In this document: positions 1 through 7,822 of the stretch, piece after piece
How positions within the stretch are numbered: the stretch's first letter is position 1
Layout: each line of letters starts with the position of its first letter
Sequence record: LR756500.1
Reading direction: 5' to 3' (one strand)
Length of the DNA: 64,000 bases
Made by a program: the position numbers and the translations under genes
The notes under the pieces: model-generated
Told to the model about the DNA's origin: nothing
Database searches by the model: none
Seen by the model: the letters and a program-made list of their open reading frames with translations, nothing else

Positions 1-381
1 TAATGCTAAATCTGCAGCATCTTTTAACTTTAGCCATTCTTTACGAAGCTTTTGAATTCTTTCATGCTGCTCAGATACTAATTTAACTCTTTCATCTGAT
101 TTTAAAATCTCTTTAGCAACAAAATGAAATAATCTATTTATACTACCTAAACTATTAACAAATCTACATTTATTTAAAAATCTTTTAAGCCTTTTTCTAT
201 CACATATTCCTAAATCAGTTATATGACTTTCTTTTACTTCTTGTAAAAGATCTTGTTTACCTTTAAAGGTATATACCTTTTTATCATCAATAATTGTGTT
301 ATTTTGTAATTTTTCAATTTCATTTATTGTATTATAATATTCATTGAACAAATTTGCGTTGTGATCTACTATTTTTTCCAT
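1..381 (-). CDS. Hypothetical protein, runs off the window edge (MEKIVDHTQICSM...KLRKEWLKLKDAADLAL)
   Basis: Manually translated: ATG at 381, frame open to position 1; absent from the ORF track because it is partial. Confidence 0.7.
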   Translation of the reverse strand, partial: MEKIVDHNANLFNEYYNTINEIEKLQNNTIIDDKKVYTFKGKQDLLQEVKESHITDLGICDRKRLKRFLNKCRFVNSLGSINRLFHFVAKEILKSDERVKLVSEQHERIQKLRKEWLKLKDAADLAL

Positions 382-495: not shown

Positions 496-837
496 TTAAA
501 TTTCACGAAGCATAAGTGGTAAACTTGAACATATTCTTTTAGACTCAATTCCTGGCTCAACAGCAATTGCAGTAAGTTGATTGCCTATATCAGGTTCTCT
601 AAATTCTGTATAAGCCAACTTAGAATGCATAAATTTAGAAATATACTTTTCTAATTCGCATTCATTTTTAACAGATAATAAACAAAGATAATTTGAATTT
701 TTATTCCAACATTTAGAAATTTCTGGATATTGATGTTGAAAATCTATAGCAGCATGTGTAGCCTGAACTGCCTGATAACCAGGCTTTAAATCTTCCCTAG
801 TAATAATAATTAGTTTATGATTATTAATCTACTTCAT
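496..837 (-). CDS. pth2: Peptidyl-tRNA hydrolase, Pth2 family, with in-frame TAG at codon 3
   Basis: MK*INNHKLIIITREDLKPGYQAVQATHAA...FREPDIGNQLTAIAVEP; the R.DL..G...Q..HA and D.G...TA.A..P motifs are typical of Pth2. Confidence 0.8.
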
Positions 838-861
838 AACAAAATTTATTTAATTATTATA

Positions 862-886
862 TGCAAATATAATAAAAATGTTTCAA
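862..886 (-). promoter_or_regulatory. Early-type promoter: AAAC-N8-TATATTTGCA (Bacteroidota TAnnTTTG -7 element)
   Basis: Minus strand TTGAAACATTTTTATTATATTTGCA just upstream of pth2; the motif recurs upstream of several other gene blocks. Confidence 0.6.
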
Positions 887-893
887 ATAAAAA

Positions 894-1316
894 TTATTTT
901 TTTAATTTATTTTTAACTATTATTTTTAATAATTCATAATTTAAATCATTTGGATGTAATTCCATACAATTTTTCATAAAAAAACCAAAATATGATTGTT
1001 CTCCATATATATGTTTATTAAATTCTTCATTATTATTTTTAATAACGTTATTTACTAAATTAATAGTTTCTTCTTCTGATAAATATTTTGGAAGATATTT
1101 TTCAATTATACAAATTTCATTTATTGCTTGTATGGTTCCTATTGTTTCTAGATTACTTATTAATGTTCTTAGAATAAAGTTAACTTCATAATCTTTTAAT
1201 ATTTTATTAAATTGTCTATGAAACTCTCCAATAATTACTTTTAATATACTAATATATTCCTTATCTTTATTTTTGATAGCTATTTTTAAGTCATTTTTAA
1301 TTTTATTTTGAAGCAT
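894..1316 (-). CDS. GatB/YqeY-like protein
   Basis: LK.AIK.KD...ISILK..IGE N-terminus and E..I..KYLP..LS.EE motif. Confidence 0.7.
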   Translation of the reverse strand: MLQNKIKNDLKIAIKNKDKEYISILKVIIGEFHRQFNKILKDYEVNFILRTLISNLETIGTIQAINEICIIEKYLPKYLSEEETINLVNNVIKNNNEEFNKHIYGEQSYFGFFMKNCMELHPNDLNYELLKIIVKNKLKK

Positions 1317-1793: not shown

Positions 1794-2336
1794 TTAAGAT
1801 ATATCAATAATTAAATCTAATATTTCTTCTGCAGAATCTTCTATACTTAAAATATCAGTTCTTAATTCAAGATCTGGATCTTCTGGAGCTTCATATGGAG
1901 AATCTATTCCTGTAAAATCTTTTATTTTACCAGCTCTAACTTTTTTATAAAGTCCTTTAACATCTCTTCTTTCACATAATTCAATTGGAGCATTAACATA
2001 AATTTCTATAAAATTTTCTAAACCTATAATTTCTTTAGCTAAATCTCTAATTTCCTTAGTAGGACTAATAAAAGAAACTATTACATTTCTATTATTTAAT
2101 ATAAATAATTTTGCAATTTCGGCAACTCTTCTAATATTTTCTTTTCTATCATTATTAGTAAATCCTAAATCTTTATTTATACCAAGTCTTAAATCATCTC
2201 CATCAAGAATTATAATACCTGAATATTCTTTTTTTACCTGCTTTGCTATTGTTGTTTTACCAGCTCCAGATAATCCAGTTAACCAATATACTTTTTTCAT
2301 TGTTTTTAATTTATATATCGTATACTTCAGCGACAC
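1794..2336 (-). CDS. cysC: Adenylyl-sulfate (APS) kinase
   Basis: WLTGLSGAGKTT P-loop, LDGDDLR, DRKENIRRVAE, SFISP, CERRDVKGLY, FTGIDSPYEAP; true start probably the downstream MKKVYW. Confidence 0.95.
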   Translation of the reverse strand: MSLKYTIYKLKTMKKVYWLTGLSGAGKTTIAKQVKKEYSGIIILDGDDLRLGINKDLGFTNNDRKENIRRVAEIAKLFILNNRNVIVSFISPTKEIRDLAKEIIGLENFIEIYVNAPIELCERRDVKGLYKKVRAGKIKDFTGIDSPYEAPEDPDLELRTDILSIEDSAEEILDLIIDIS

Positions 2337-2745
2337 CGTGATCTACTATTACAACCATAGTTTCTGTTAAATTTTCTTTTAATTTTAAAGCAGCTTCTTT
2401 ATCAATAATATCAAGAACTTTTTGCATGTATTCTCTTAATGCTAAACCTCTTGCAAATGGAATTTCACCTCTATCTCTAATATCTTGCCAATTAAAATTA
2501 GGCATTAATGCATTAGCTATATCTAATCCAAATGGAGCATCAACATTAATAATAACTATAACTACATCATTATTTGTTAAATGTCTTTCATTAATTCTAT
2601 TTCTAAAATGTACAATTCTATCTATATTGAGATGAAATGTATTTATACAATTACTTTTTTCAACTGCTTTAATTACAGAAACTGCTTCAGGATCAATTAA
2701 AACAATTTCGCCATTAATATTTTCTATTCGTGGTAAATTTTCCAT
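2311..2745 (-). CDS. Hypothetical protein
   Basis: 144-aa ORF in operon context. Confidence 0.65.
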   Translation of the reverse strand: MENLPRIENINGEIVLIDPEAVSVIKAVEKSNCINTFHLNIDRIVHFRNRINERHLTNNDVVIVIINVDAPFGLDIANALMPNFNWQDIRDRGEIPFARGLALREYMQKVLDIIDKEAALKLKENLTETMVVIVDHGVAEVYDI

Positions 2746-3221
2746 TATTTTATAAAATCATTACGTAATTGTGTTAATACTTTTCCTAATAAATTTTGAC
2801 CTGGCCATTTATTTTCTGGAATATTTACAGCATCTTCTTCTAATAATCCAATACCCCATATTTTATCATAAGGACTTGCTTCTACTAAAGTTCTAGTTTC
2901 AGTAGCAATTAATTGTTTTAATAGGTTTGGATTTTGTTCAAATTTTTCTTTATTAACATCATACATAAAATTATATGATATTTTACTCCATTTATCAGTA
3001 TCAAATCCTTTAACTTTTCTTCCTAATTTTTTATTTAAACTCGGATTAGGTTCATTTAAAATTTCATTTGCTGTTTTAGAATCATTAAAATAATTTGCTT
3101 TTTCCCACATAAAAGCTTGTTCACTATTTGAAAATTCTAAACTTTTATAATTAAATTTAACAGAATACCAATTGGAATATATTCCATTCCAAAAAAATAC
3201 ATACTTATCAGTTGTTATCAT
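2745..3221 (-). CDS. NADAR (YbiA-like) family hydrolase
   Basis: FFW...SNWY, EQAFMWEKA, KKLGRKVKGFD, LVEASPYDKIWGIGL, G.NLLG..L..LR. Confidence 0.93.
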   Translation of the reverse strand: MITTDKYVFFWNGIYSNWYSVKFNYKSLEFSNSEQAFMWEKANYFNDSKTANEILNEPNPSLNKKLGRKVKGFDTDKWSKISYNFMYDVNKEKFEQNPNLLKQLIATETRTLVEASPYDKIWGIGLLEEDAVNIPENKWPGQNLLGKVLTQLRNDFIK

Positions 3222-3243
3222 TTCTAAAAATATTAAAAATTAG

Positions 3244-3314
3244 AGGGCCTAGAGGGATTCAAACCCCCGTAGTCAGCTTTGCAGGCTGCGACCTAATCAC
3301 TCGGACATAGGCCC
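3244..3314 (-). tRNA. trnC: tRNA-Cys(GCA)
   Basis: GGGCCTA/TAGGCCC acceptor stem, CT-GCA-AA anticodon loop, U73; D-loop and T-loop (TTTGAAT) slightly non-canonical. Confidence 0.82.
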
Positions 3315-3321
3315 ATATCGT

Positions 3322-4278
3322 TTATCTATTAAAAAACTCTTTTTCGTTATAATACAACATACTTAATCTAGTAGCAAATGTTTTATCAGATGTACTATCT
3401 CCTATCATTATACATTGTTTAGGATCTAACATATATTTATATATTAGATCTATACCCATTCCACTTTGAGGTTTTCTACAATAACAAATTTCCTTAGGTA
3501 TACTATGAGGACAATATTTATAATCATCAATAATATTATTCATTAAAGAATTTGTTTCTTTAATTATATCTTCAACGTTATCTATAAAGTGACCTTTATT
3601 AACTCCTGATTGATTAGTTACTGCTAAAATTAAAAATCCTCTATTTTTATATTTTTGTAAAATGCTTACGGTATTTTCTAAAATATATTGATCATTTAAG
3701 TTAATTGGATATTTTTCTCCACTAACTGTTTTTCTAACAGTACCATCTAAATCAATTAATAATGCTTTATTTTTTAAATTAGTATCCCAAATTCTTTCAA
3801 ATTCTGTAATTACTAATTCATTATAATCTGTAACTTTAGGCTTTTTAAATTCTTTTGAATACTTAAATATTGCTGGAAGAACCCAAACATTTGGATTATT
3901 TTTAAATATAATAGGAATAGTATCTGTATAATTATGAAAGCTTCCTGTAATTTTTTTAATTCTAATATAAGAATTAATTAATGCATCTTCTTTAGAAGTA
4001 TTCATTAAATGAAATCCTATTGTGTGTTTATGATATTTACAATTATCTATAAATAAATATCTTGTATTTTCATTAGGAAGAGTTGCATCAATTACTATTT
4101 TCTTAACACCGTCTTTTATATGTTTTTCATGAAGTGCAGCTAAATCTATCATAGAAATATTTAAGCTATCTCTATTTAAAATTAAATATCCTAATTTTTC
4201 GTATTCTTTTGAAATACTAGATTTTCCACTTGCTGGATATCCTCCAATTAAAACAGTATCAGTATTACAAAGTTTCAT
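3322..4278 (-). CDS. Polynucleotide kinase/3'-phosphatase-like (P-loop kinase + HAD-IIIA phosphatase)
   Basis: GGYPASGKS and IVIDAT kinase motifs; DLDGTVR, TNQSG, CRKP..GM and MIGD...D HAD-IIIA motifs. Confidence 0.8.
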   Translation of the reverse strand: MKLCNTDTVLIGGYPASGKSSISKEYEKLGYLILNRDSLNISMIDLAALHEKHIKDGVKKIVIDATLPNENTRYLFIDNCKYHKHTIGFHLMNTSKEDALINSYIRIKKITGSFHNYTDTIPIIFKNNPNVWVLPAIFKYSKEFKKPKVTDYNELVITEFERIWDTNLKNKALLIDLDGTVRKTVSGEKYPINLNDQYILENTVSILQKYKNRGFLILAVTNQSGVNKGHFIDNVEDIIKETNSLMNNIIDDYKYCPHSIPKEICYCRKPQSGMGIDLIYKYMLDPKQCIMIGDSTSDKTFATRLSMLYYNEKEFFNR

Positions 4279-6098: not shown

Positions 6099-6160
6099 AA
6101 TGATATTTTTATTTTATATATCATTATATCTAGTCTAAACCAATTACCATTATGACCTTG

Positions 6161-6242
6161 TAACGAAGGAGAGATTCGAACTCTCACGCAATTAAGCATC
6201 AGTTCCTAAGACTGACGGGTCTTACCGTTCCCCCACTTCGTC
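6161..6242 (-). tRNA. trnL: tRNA-Leu(TAG)
   Basis: GACGAAG/CTTCGTT acceptor, TCAGT-CTTAGGA-ACTGA anticodon arm, long variable arm, GAGAG-TTCGAAT-CTCTC T arm, A73. Confidence 0.9.
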
Positions 6243-6250
6243 ATTTATAT

Positions 6251-6484
6251 TTAAAACATTATACGGTCATCATCGGGTTCATATCGTGATTTATCAAATA
6301 ATACATGTATTGGACTATTACCATCACTTTGTATTTTAACCGTATAACCGGTTTGCTCTTTAATTCTATTAAACATCTTTTCCATTGCAGCTGGCATATC
6401 TTTAGTTGCTATACCTTCTATTTGATCACCAAATGAAATAGGCTGAACATTTCTAACTATTGGAAAACTCCATTCAAAATCCAT
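6251..6484 (-). CDS. Hypothetical protein
   Basis: 77-aa ORF. Confidence 0.55.
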   Translation of the reverse strand: MDFEWSFPIVRNVQPISFGDQIEGIATKDMPAAMEKMFNRIKEQTGYTVKIQSDGNSPIHVLFDKSRYEPDDDRIMF

Positions 6485-6495
6485 AATTTTATTTT

Positions 6496-6861
6496 TTAAA
6501 TTGTATCAATTTCTGGTGAACCATCATTCATTGTTATAAAATAATAATCTCTCGCAAACATTAATGTACTTGGATCTTCAACCATTTTATTTATCTTTCT
6601 TACTGCATCGAGAATAATCTTTGGTACATTTGAAATTCTTTTATCATTAAAATTAATTACACTTATATTTGGATAATTCTTTTTAATATAATGTTTGTGT
6701 ATATCAGGATATGATAAACTTGAAAGATAATCTATATCCCATAGTTTACCTTGATTTTTTTCAGATAGACCTATAAGCTTTCCTGATCTCCATATTCCAA
6801 ATGCATTATTTCCTAAAATTAAAATACTTAAATAAACATTCTTTATATTATTTGAACTCAT
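6496..6861 (-). CDS. Hypothetical protein
   Basis: 121-aa ORF. Confidence 0.6.
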   Translation of the reverse strand: MSSNNIKNVYLSILILGNNAFGIWRSGKLIGLSEKNQGKLWDIDYLSSLSYPDIHKHYIKKNYPNISVINFNDKRISNVPKIILDAVRKINKMVEDPSTLMFARDYYFITMNDGSPEIDTI

Positions 6862-6865
6862 AATT

Positions 6866-7102
6866 TTATTTTTTAACTCTATAACATATTCCTTCTAAAA
6901 TATATTTATCTTCTTTATCTATTCTAATTTTAGGAGCAGGAAGATCTTCATATTTACTATAAATAGCTTCTAATACACCACCATCACATTTTTTATTTTT
7001 ACATTTAGGACCATTATAATTTCTTTCGAATGATGTCCACATTTCACTTCCACATTTACTGCATATAGCAGATAGTCCTATATCATATATTCTTCCACTC
7101 AT
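6866..7102 (-). CDS. Small Zn-ribbon protein
   Basis: CSKC...CKNKKC cysteine pairs. Confidence 0.55.
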   Translation of the reverse strand: MSGRIYDIGLSAICSKCGSEMWTSFERNYNGPKCKNKKCDGGVLEAIYSKYEDLPAPKIRIDKEDKYILEGICYRVKK

Positions 7103-7347
7103 GACTTACAAATACTTAGATTACTTTCAAATACAAATGAATTTTGTTCAATTGCTTTTCTAATATATCTCATAAAAAGAATCGCTTTATCTTCATTTGA
7201 AAAAGTTGCATCTCCAATATCTTGAATAGGTACTGGAAATAAATATTTTTTATTATCAACATTTACATTATAATATAAATGTCCTGCTCTATAATATGAA
7301 AAATAAACTTTATTGTCTTTTATAATTTCTTTTATATTTGGTAACAT
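7099..7347 (-). CDS. Conserved phage hypothetical protein
   Basis: YYRAGHLYY...FPVPI.DIGDATF...KAI.FMRYIRKA pattern. Confidence 0.65.
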   Translation of the reverse strand: MLPNIKEIIKDNKVYFSYYRAGHLYYNVNVDNKKYLFPVPIQDIGDATFSNEDKAILFMRYIRKAIEQNSFVFESNLSICKS

Positions 7348-7367
7348 AACTTTTTTTATTTAGTTTG

Positions 7368-7444
7368 TCCGCTAAGATGGATTTGAACCAGCATGTAACC
7401 AATTAACCTTTCAACCGGGTATCAGCCGGAGGGTATATTAGCGG
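7368..7444 (-). ncRNA. Rearranged tRNA-like RNA with GAT (Ile) anticodon loop and no D-arm at the normal position
   Basis: CCGCTAA/TTAGCGG acceptor + A73, GCTGG-TTCAAAT-CCATC T arm, CCGG-CTGATAC-CCGG anticodon arm only 8 nt after the acceptor strand. Confidence 0.65.
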
Positions 7445-7455
7445 TTTATAATTTG

Positions 7456-7526
7456 CAGATCTACAAAGATTCGAACTCTGAAAGACGGGTCTGGAATCCG
7501 TCGTGTTACCATTACACTATAGACCT
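7456..7526 (-). tRNA. trnW: tRNA-Trp(CCA)
   Basis: AGGTCTA/TAGATCT acceptor, GTGT-AATGGTA-ACAC D arm, TT-CCA-GA loop, TTCGAAT T loop, G73. Confidence 0.9.
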
Positions 7527-7537
7527 ATTTAAATTCG

Positions 7538-7613
7538 TGGGAACTGAGAGATTTGAACTCCCGGCCTTAATTTTGTAAGAATTCTGCTCTAAACCAAACT
7601 GAGCTAAGCTCCC
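7538..7613 (-). tRNA. trnV: tRNA-Val(TAC)
   Basis: GGGAGCT/AGTTCCC acceptor, GCTC/GAGC D stem, CT-TAC-AA loop, A73. Confidence 0.92.
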
Positions 7614-7632
7614 ATTTACACCTAAACTTTTG

Positions 7633-7716
7633 TACTACGTATGGGATTCGAACCCATGAGTTGTTTCCAACACAACAGTGAAAGTGTTGCGACCTAAACC
7701 TCTAGTCGAACGTAGC
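7633..7716 (-). tRNA. trnE: tRNA-Glu(TTC) with long variable arm
   Basis: GCTACGT/ACGTAGT acceptor, CAACA-CTTTCAC-TGTTG anticodon arm, extra GTTG-GAAA-CAAC hairpin, ATGGG-TTCGAAT-CCCAT T arm. Confidence 0.88.
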
Positions 7717-7738
7717 ATTTAAATTTGGGTGGAAGATG

Positions 7739-7822
7739 GGTACCTGATAGGATTCGAACCTACGATGTTTCTAATGTATAGAGCCACAATCTATTGCCTT
7801 CGGCCGCTAGGCTACAGATACC
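7739..7822 (-). tRNA. trnH: tRNA-His(GTG) with encoded G-1 and 14-nt variable region
   Basis: G-1:C73 pair, GTATCTG/CAGGTAC acceptor, ATAGA-TTGTGGC-TCTAT anticodon arm. Confidence 0.9.

Follow-up and report, generated by a model that had tools for sequence, protein, structure and literature searches.

The window analysed here is a stretch of 64,000 nucleotides that corresponds to positions 111001-175000 of LR756500.1, the genome of a 462-kb uncultured phage; the sequencing runs that contain the sequence are groundwater metagenomes. A Pth2-like gene lies on its minus strand at window 837-496, and the third codon of this gene is an amber stop. The features around it are as follows (window positions).

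496..837, minus strand: Pth2-like gene, consisting of an ATG AAG leader, the amber codon, a Pth2 domain of 110 codons and TAA
829..831, minus strand: in-frame TAG at codon 3, the proposed target of the phage tRNA(CUA)
436..486, minus strand: second copy of the start motif, GTTATGAAATAGATTAA, which opens a 15-codon frame MK*IKITIRGPTYLF with its own TAG
1..381, minus strand: gene between Pth2 and the suppressor tRNA, 144 aa, running out of the window, no Pfam match
894..1316, minus strand: YqeY/GatB-C-terminal-like gene directly upstream of Pth2 (Pfam YqeY, E=2.2e-10)
1794-4278, minus strand: genes for an adenylylsulfate kinase (E=2.6e-55) and a NADAR protein (E=8e-45), upstream of the Pth2 region

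The Pth2 frame and its surroundings

On the minus strand, ATG occupies positions 837-835, AAG 834-832, TAG 831-829 and ATT 828-826, and behind the TAG the translated frame runs without interruption until the TAA at 498-496. The 110 residues behind the TAG match Pfam PTH2 (PF01981) with 30.8 bits and E=3.7e-7, at a cut-off of 23 bits and over profile positions 2-103 of 115. Because this match begins at profile position 2, the codons directly behind the TAG are needed for the domain. The next in-frame ATG, GTG or TTG follows only 66 codons further along the frame, which leaves no canonical start behind the TAG from which the Pth2 domain could be made. The first-pass annotation of this DNA had described a TAG as the third codon, with the Pth2 domain following in frame. 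Both the translation and the Pfam match agree with this and show the Pth2-like gene to be intact. The TAG is spanned by a 28.5-kb contig of the likely source sample and by a contig from a second groundwater sample of the same study, both of them showing 0 differences. Identical contigs from two samples argue that the TAG is no assembly slip or sequencing error. The annotation had taken the same position, which is strengthened further by conservation of the TAG in 51 loci as described below. No read-through-stimulating RNA structure was found near the TAG (z=0.06).

The annotation had also pointed to a recurrence of the start motif about 350 nt downstream. This 17-nt motif, GTTATGAA[G/A]TAGATTAA, is indeed found again at window 486-470 on the minus strand, at a distance of 354 nt, and the two copies are the only exact matches in the 64 kb. 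In-frame TAA stops lie between the second copy and the ATG of the following gene at 381. The repeat is real and at the same time peculiar to LR756500: it is absent from all 49 related loci examined, and it is probably a local duplication of the 5' end of Pth2. We rejected the repeated motif as a promoter or regulatory site, given that its 14-mer with at most 2 mismatches has 22 matches in the window versus 15.9 expected. The early promoter that the annotation had placed ahead of the gene found no confirmation in a sigma-70 scan of the minus strand upstream of the ATG, which gave no match; host promoters may differ.

Several further observations concern the neighbouring genes. A further protein encoded at window 1794-4278 (minus strand) has a HAD-type domain of the polynucleotide kinase 3'-phosphatase kind and matches AAA_33 weakly. 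In the Xanthomonas phages XacN1 and Xoo-sp13, a gene annotated as 'glutamyl-tRNA amidotransferase' is located about 1.2 kb upstream of the gene with the Pth2-like domain, and this domain forms the C-terminal part of a 280-aa protein. The YqeY/GatB-like genes of these two loci lie at the following positions.

L099:345-788: YqeY/GatB-like gene, XacN1 locus
L100:654-1100: YqeY/GatB-like gene, Xoo-sp13 locus

Where two minus-strand genes of LR756500 meet, a near-perfect hairpin of 69 nt is found (L003:9647-9715). It gives sub-threshold matches to miRNA-precursor models on both strands, so that it is simply a long palindrome.

Membership of the protein in the PTH2 family is supported by the profile score above threshold and by the alpha/beta Pth2 fold of the model. 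The AlphaFold model has a pLDDT of 95.3 and a pTM of 0.88. Its top Foldseek matches are all Pth2 structures (2zv3, 3erj, 1q7s, 1xty, 1wn2 and 1rlk; TM 0.77-0.81), and the structures superposed on the model include archaeal and human Pth2. A profile built from 40 homologs matches solved Pth2 chains with E=1e-8 to 2e-3. In the model, the TAG position is part of a coil five residues ahead of the first strand, which starts six residues past the TAG. With the TAG in this coil, the model predicts that any amino acid should fit there. The catalytic residues of Pth2, known from work on the archaeal enzyme, are the lysine of a Gly-Lys motif together with an aspartate and a threonine. When the phage family is aligned by HMM with solved chains, it retains the aspartate (ePD) and the threonine (iTA), and the column of the Gly-Lys lysine holds a nearly invariant tyrosine (PGYQ). 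With tyrosine replacing this lysine, the hydrolase activity of the phage family is putative.

Conservation of the leader TAG

A scan of IMG/VR gave 80 loci before removal of duplicates. At 51 non-redundant related loci (50 and L063), an ATG leader of 2-7 codons is followed by an in-frame TAG, which lies 1-11 codons ahead of a conserved KL(I/V/Y)xxTR strand. Leaders with two sense codons are the most frequent (27/50), followed by those with three (16/50). Only one locus has a canonical start between the leader TAG and the domain. Four more records of huge phages begin with ATG TCG TAG ATT, ATG AAC AAT TAG ATT, ATG ACA TAG ATT and ATG TTA CAC TAG ATT. Upstream of the domain, the nearest in-frame stop is TAG in 51 of 52 leaders (binomial p=6e-36, with a baseline of 19% TAG among stop trinucleotides taken from the LR756500 genome). 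On a 675-kb IMG/VR contig (L052:9980-10010), TAA replaces TAG behind an MKET leader, and no tRNA is found within 20 kb. The first-pass annotation had proposed to align homologs for a conserved ATG-NNN-TAG. The TAG of this pattern is conserved in the 51 loci, and the single intervening codon is not, as leader length varies.

The codons on both sides of the TAG were tabulated for 50 leaders. The residue before it is Lys in 17, Thr in 8, Leu in 8, Asn in 4, His in 4 and Ser in 3, and Tyr, Ile, Phe, Ala or Arg occur in some others. Behind it follow ATT in 27 leaders, GTT in 8 and GTA in 4, and further ATA, ATC, ACN, CTT, AAN and AGC. Protein identity of the domain among the TAG loci is only 40-70%; the domain is intact and under clear purifying selection.

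The comparison with TAG-less homologs, which are located on GC-rich contigs, is informative for the reading of the frame. These homologs start with MATIKMGD-KLY, MASIKMGD or MAPIKMGD, and TAG-bearing homologs start with MA-TAG-IKEGD-KLY, MS-TAG-IKYGD or MCL-TAG-VKEGD. The TAG column aligns with Thr, Ser, Pro or Ala of the TAG-less relatives. Since the leader and the Ile/Val-Lys are homologous on both sides of the TAG, the frame appears to be read through and the TAG site to be translated. The Ile/Val behind the TAG is kept as an amino acid and not as a start codon, and it is internal in the TAG-less relatives. A sense codon at the TAG position in homologs, which the annotation had named as evidence against its reading, is found in the GC-rich clades only, and most of the family keeps the TAG. 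Database homologs at 60-69% identity seem to begin with M-[T/K]-Q-I-N. We rejected this 'Q' as evidence for glutamine, because it comes from TAG codons translated under code 15 (TAG=Q), which the gene caller had assumed.

On a tree of 68 domain sequences, for which the leader columns were left out, the TAG state requires only 2 changes, compared to a mean of 14.6 for shuffled states, and none of 500 shuffles gave a number as low. TAG-bearing branches cover most of this tree. A stop codon that was neutral or harmful would not last in such a pattern. We consider it likely from these comparisons that the Pth2-like gene with TAG as third codon is intact and that its TAG is kept by selection.

tRNAs next to Pth2

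tRNAs were called with ARAGORN and Rfam. According to ARAGORN, the whole 462-kb genome contains a single tRNA(CUA), at LR756500 110652-110720 on the minus strand (L003:10652-10720). Pth2 lies on this strand too; from its stop it is about 0.78 kb downstream to the tRNA, which falls outside the window, 281-349 nt past window position 1. Its score against the Rfam tRNA model is 43.7 bits, at a gathering score of 29, and its D arm is shortened by a 3-nt deletion in the D stem. It forms a cloverleaf with CUA in a 7-nt loop, preceded by U and followed by A. A YU-CUA-AA loop is common to the 34 relatives of this tRNA, and 18 of 19 pairs have compensatory changes among them; the tRNA(CUA) genes of the related loci are diverse in sequence and fold into cloverleaves. 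An assignment of the amino acid of the suppressor by likeness to other tRNAs was rejected for inconsistency. For the genome as a whole, ARAGORN gives 26 tRNAs, all encoded on one strand together with a tmRNA at 94511-94921, whose tag is GNNAEMRMAA. Several of the tRNAs are longer than is usual for their type, with 85 nt for Glu, 84 nt for His, 81 nt for Ala and 78 nt for Asp. tRNA-bearing stretches are found at window 6160-7821 (minus strand) and at LR756500 61428-118821.

Presence of the leader TAG goes together with presence of the tRNA. A same-strand tRNA(CUA) is found at 47 of the 49 TAG-leader loci with adequate flank versus 3 of 19 TAG-less loci (Fisher p=9e-11), a co-occurrence that rests on few independent events, given about two state changes on the tree. 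Two loci stop at a contig edge just past Pth2 and are unscored. The tRNA(CUA) mostly lies within about 2 kb of Pth2, usually 60-350 nt upstream or 0-1.9 kb downstream, and at about ten loci it is the sole tRNA in 10-20 kb. LR756501, included in the 47 on the basis of wider flanks, has two tRNA(CUA) genes, which are the only tRNAs in 20 kb. The two exceptions, both from 635-kb phage genomes, are the following.

L105, LR745206 328000-348000: TAG leader present, no tRNA(CUA) within 10 kb on either side
L106, LR756504 372000-392000: TAG leader present, no tRNA(CUA) within 10 kb on either side

A wider search of LR745206 and LR756504 by covariance model and loop pattern, with part of the tRNA hits inspected, also gave no tRNA(CUA). 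In LR756504, a tRNA with 'tcta' in its 8-nt loop lies about 100 kb from Pth2 (L123:1488-1563). We looked for a conserved protein partner in the module of Pth2 and tRNA and rejected it, because the neighbouring ORF families vary and mostly have no Pfam match. The exceptions among these neighbours are a NUMOD3 homing endonuclease, a weak Macro match and a PD-(D/E)XK nuclease.

Unusual tRNAs are also found next to Pth2 genes of other kinds. GC-rich TAG-less homologs are followed after 0.3-2 kb by a lone tRNA that carries UUCA in an 8-nt anticodon loop (UUAU in L074). Against the Rfam tRNA model these tRNAs score 41-53 bits, with one extra base in the loop. The codons that they may decode are opal or ochre stops, or quadruplets. 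Their positions are listed here.

L065:10332-10404: tRNA with 8-nt loop
L072:11494-11566: tRNA with 8-nt loop
L073:10737-10809: tRNA with 8-nt loop
L074:11300-11372: tRNA with 8-nt loop
L092:1537-1608: tRNA with 8-nt loop
L094:11945-12019: tRNA with 8-nt loop

In L098 and in Lak-A1, an ochre tRNA(tta) lies near Pth2. The Mycobacterium phage Catera has ATG-TAG in frame directly before the annotated GTG start of Pth2 (L101:2471-2479), and Myrna has GTG-TAG at the same place (L103:2480-2488). Both encode a tRNA directly downstream (Catera L101:3102-3175, Myrna L103:2972-3043) with anticodon CTA according to ARAGORN, annotated in GenBank as tRNA-Arg or tRNA-Ser. Pth2 seems to be linked to stop-reading tRNAs more generally.

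Amber suppression as a probable gate for Pth2 synthesis

The reading that we favour is a programmed amber suppression. Ribosomes would begin at the Pth2 ATG and, with no suppressor, would halt after two codons. Where the UAG is decoded by the adjoining phage tRNA(CUA), translation would proceed into the Pth2 fold, and the yield of Pth2 would be conditional on, and scale with, the amber-suppression activity in the infected cell. We infer that the tRNA(CUA) is charged and decodes the UAG of Pth2. The support for gating is comparative throughout, and on this basis Pth2 synthesis is probably gated by suppression from the neighbouring phage tRNA. The recurrence of TAG and adjacent tRNA(CUA) in about 50 distant phages suggests that the enzyme is probably made only with a working suppressor. 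In all likelihood, Pth2 gene and tRNA(CUA) make up a two-part module that is conserved among many huge phages with standard code, which would make Pth2 the one clear natural client of the suppressor.

An in-frame TAG next to a tRNA(CUA) would also be expected if the phage as a whole used genetic code 15 (TAG = Gln), as Lak and crAss-like phages do, with the TAG of Pth2 as one of many. The encoded suppressor fits such a code, and so do the low number of TAG stops and the TAG=Q that gene callers gave to short homologous contigs. The genome, with 23% G+C, is however densely filled with genes under the standard code. By ORF-based coding tests, which are crude, ORF coverage of the 462 kb is 0.83 under code 11 and rises with TAG as sense to 0.84, no further than in the control with TGA as sense. 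The 475 long ORFs end in TAA (384), TGA (67) or TAG (24). Only six ORFs have an internal TAG between sizeable pieces; none is convincing in this ORF-based view, and most resemble adjacent genes or short noise ORFs. Arrangements of ATG, short leader and TAG are not enriched in the genome over their TAA and TGA equivalents. The 45 related loci likewise resemble the TGA control: in the same crude test, their median ORF coverage is 0.69 under code 11 and increases to 0.76 if TAG is counted as sense and to 0.74 if TGA is, and TAG closes 111 of their 1063 long ORFs. Recoding of the whole genome is therefore rejected on the basis of coverage by ORFs, choice of stop codons, ORFs with an internal TAG and numbers of amber leaders relative to the TAA and TGA controls, and we regard a phage-wide code 15 as very improbable. 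By these sequence criteria the genome is not code-15, and Pth2 is its one clear gene with an in-frame TAG. The only other long ORF (354 codons) with a leader of ATG, 2 codons and TAG is found at LR756500 255827 on the minus strand (locus L005). It begins MII*KEKV... and has no canonical start for 25 codons behind the TAG.

The first-pass annotation had described ATG-AAG-TAG as a minigene that terminates or drops off, with Pth2 made by read-through or by re-initiation at the ATT and the arrangement sensing release factor or tRNA-Lys. Its proposal that amber read-through gates the hydrolase gains support from the tRNA(CUA) adjacent at 47 of 49 loci, which makes read-through the likelier route on comparative grounds. 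Re-initiation would be in keeping with the very short leaders, mostly of two or three codons, with ATT, ATA or ATC directly behind the TAG in 30/50, with the GTG behind the TAG of Catera and Myrna, which is an annotated start with a well-spaced Shine-Dalgarno sequence, and with an IF3 gene close to Pth2 in locus L013. It is not general, as GTT, GTA, ACN, CTT, AAN or AGC, none of them a plausible start, stands behind the TAG in 20/50, and the Ile/Val at this position is conserved as an amino acid that is internal in TAG-less relatives. Sensing of release factor or tRNA-Lys finds no support, with Lys last in the leader in only 17/50 and a tRNA(CUA) adjoining. A minigene also leaves unexplained why the stop is TAG in 51/52 leaders of TAA-dominated genomes and why a tRNA(CUA) lies next to it, and we hold this model to be improbable. 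Little probability is also given to a TAG that silences Pth2, with the tRNA(CUA) as substrate or partner of the enzyme and not as codon reader. The tRNAs with 8-nt UUCA loops and the ochre tRNA(tta) that adjoin TAG-less Pth2 homologs suggest a partnership of Pth2 and tRNA that is independent of the TAG. A permanently silent gene would nevertheless decay, yet the domain is under purifying selection, and the simplest role for a cognate anticodon encoded beside the sole in-frame UAG is to decode it. A null allele, a pseudogene or a sequencing error at the TAG can be practically dismissed: a single transition separates TAG from CAG, but the contigs are identical across two samples, and a TAG in 51 loci with an intact domain, modelled with a pLDDT of 95, refutes such an explanation.

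The proposed amber suppression of Pth2 can be compared with two known systems. The prfB gene for RF2 has an early in-frame UGA that is passed by +1 frameshifting and senses RF2 itself. Similar to prfB, Pth2 would be a termination or quality-control factor gene with an early in-frame stop whose decoding sets its own synthesis; it differs in using tRNA suppression instead of a +1 frameshift, and any feedback of Pth2 on suppression is putative. The bar minigenes of lambda are free-standing, end in UAA or UGA and sequester tRNA, and they are linked to Pth (rap) sensitivity. They share with the present arrangement the two-codon ORF followed by a stop and the tie to peptidyl-tRNA hydrolase. In contrast to bar, the Pth2 frame runs on into the enzyme, the stop is UAG in all leaders but one, and leader length and last codon vary. 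The arrangement does not qualify as a minigene of the bar type, as the frame enters the conserved domain at all loci and a cognate tRNA gene adjoins.

Read-through of normal host and phage UAG stops should raise stalling and peptidyl-tRNA drop-off, and this would be the benefit of coupling the enzyme to the suppressor. We put forward only tentatively that, through this coupling, peptidyl-tRNA is recycled to an extent that follows suppression; the chances of this are somewhat below even. A rather unlikely extension, drawn by analogy to prfB, is that Pth2 and tRNA(CUA) form a self-regulating circuit in which the enzyme, through its own UAG, sets or buffers how much stop-codon suppression takes place in the infected cell. 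The enzyme with Tyr for Lys would in this unlikely case act on peptidyl- or aminoacyl-tRNA(CUA) or on stalled read-through products.

PTH2 of jumbo phages has already been described (Iyer et al. 2021, PMC7824862); the word 'suppressor' is absent from this survey, and no in-frame stop is noted in the PTH2 passages located there. The authors of the XacN1 genome reported suppressor tRNAs and found no target gene for them (PMC5852040). Like the present phages, XacN1 is a jumbo phage, and its genome combines tRNA(CUA) genes with a Pth-type and a YqeY/GatB-like gene. It differs in the placement of the Pth2-like domain at the C-terminus of a longer protein, which is without TAG; the present family would supply the target. 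Recoding as a suppressor-dependent translational switch has been proposed for code-15 and code-4 phages (Borges et al., preprint 10.1101/2021.08.26.457843), and the word 'hydrolase' is absent from this preprint. Code-15 phages (Lak, crAss-like and other gut phages) share with LR756500 the phage tRNA(CUA) and an in-frame TAG in a standard-code host. They carry TAG in many late and lysis genes, and their coding density collapses under code 11. LR756500, in contrast, has one TAG gene with a fixed N-terminal site and a syntenic tRNA, and TAG is still used as a stop. Our literature search found no account of a Pth2 amber codon or of a Pth2-suppressor module; many subscription papers are outside its coverage.

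The pairing of Pth2 and tRNA(CUA) would give the orphan suppressor tRNAs of standard-code jumbo phages a specific and conserved client, which is a translation quality-control enzyme. It would also explain why gene callers truncate Pth2 or wrongly give code 15 to short contigs. Catera and Myrna are cultured phages of M. smegmatis (cluster C) and offer a possible test system. One recoded gene together with one suppressor tRNA appears as a stable state, which bears on the evolution of full stop-codon reassignment. If the self-regulating circuit holds true, Pth2 and its suppressor tRNA, including the UUCA-loop and ochre tRNAs of GC-rich phages, would represent a general device for controlled read-through, and it could also be a stable first step toward a full change of the code.
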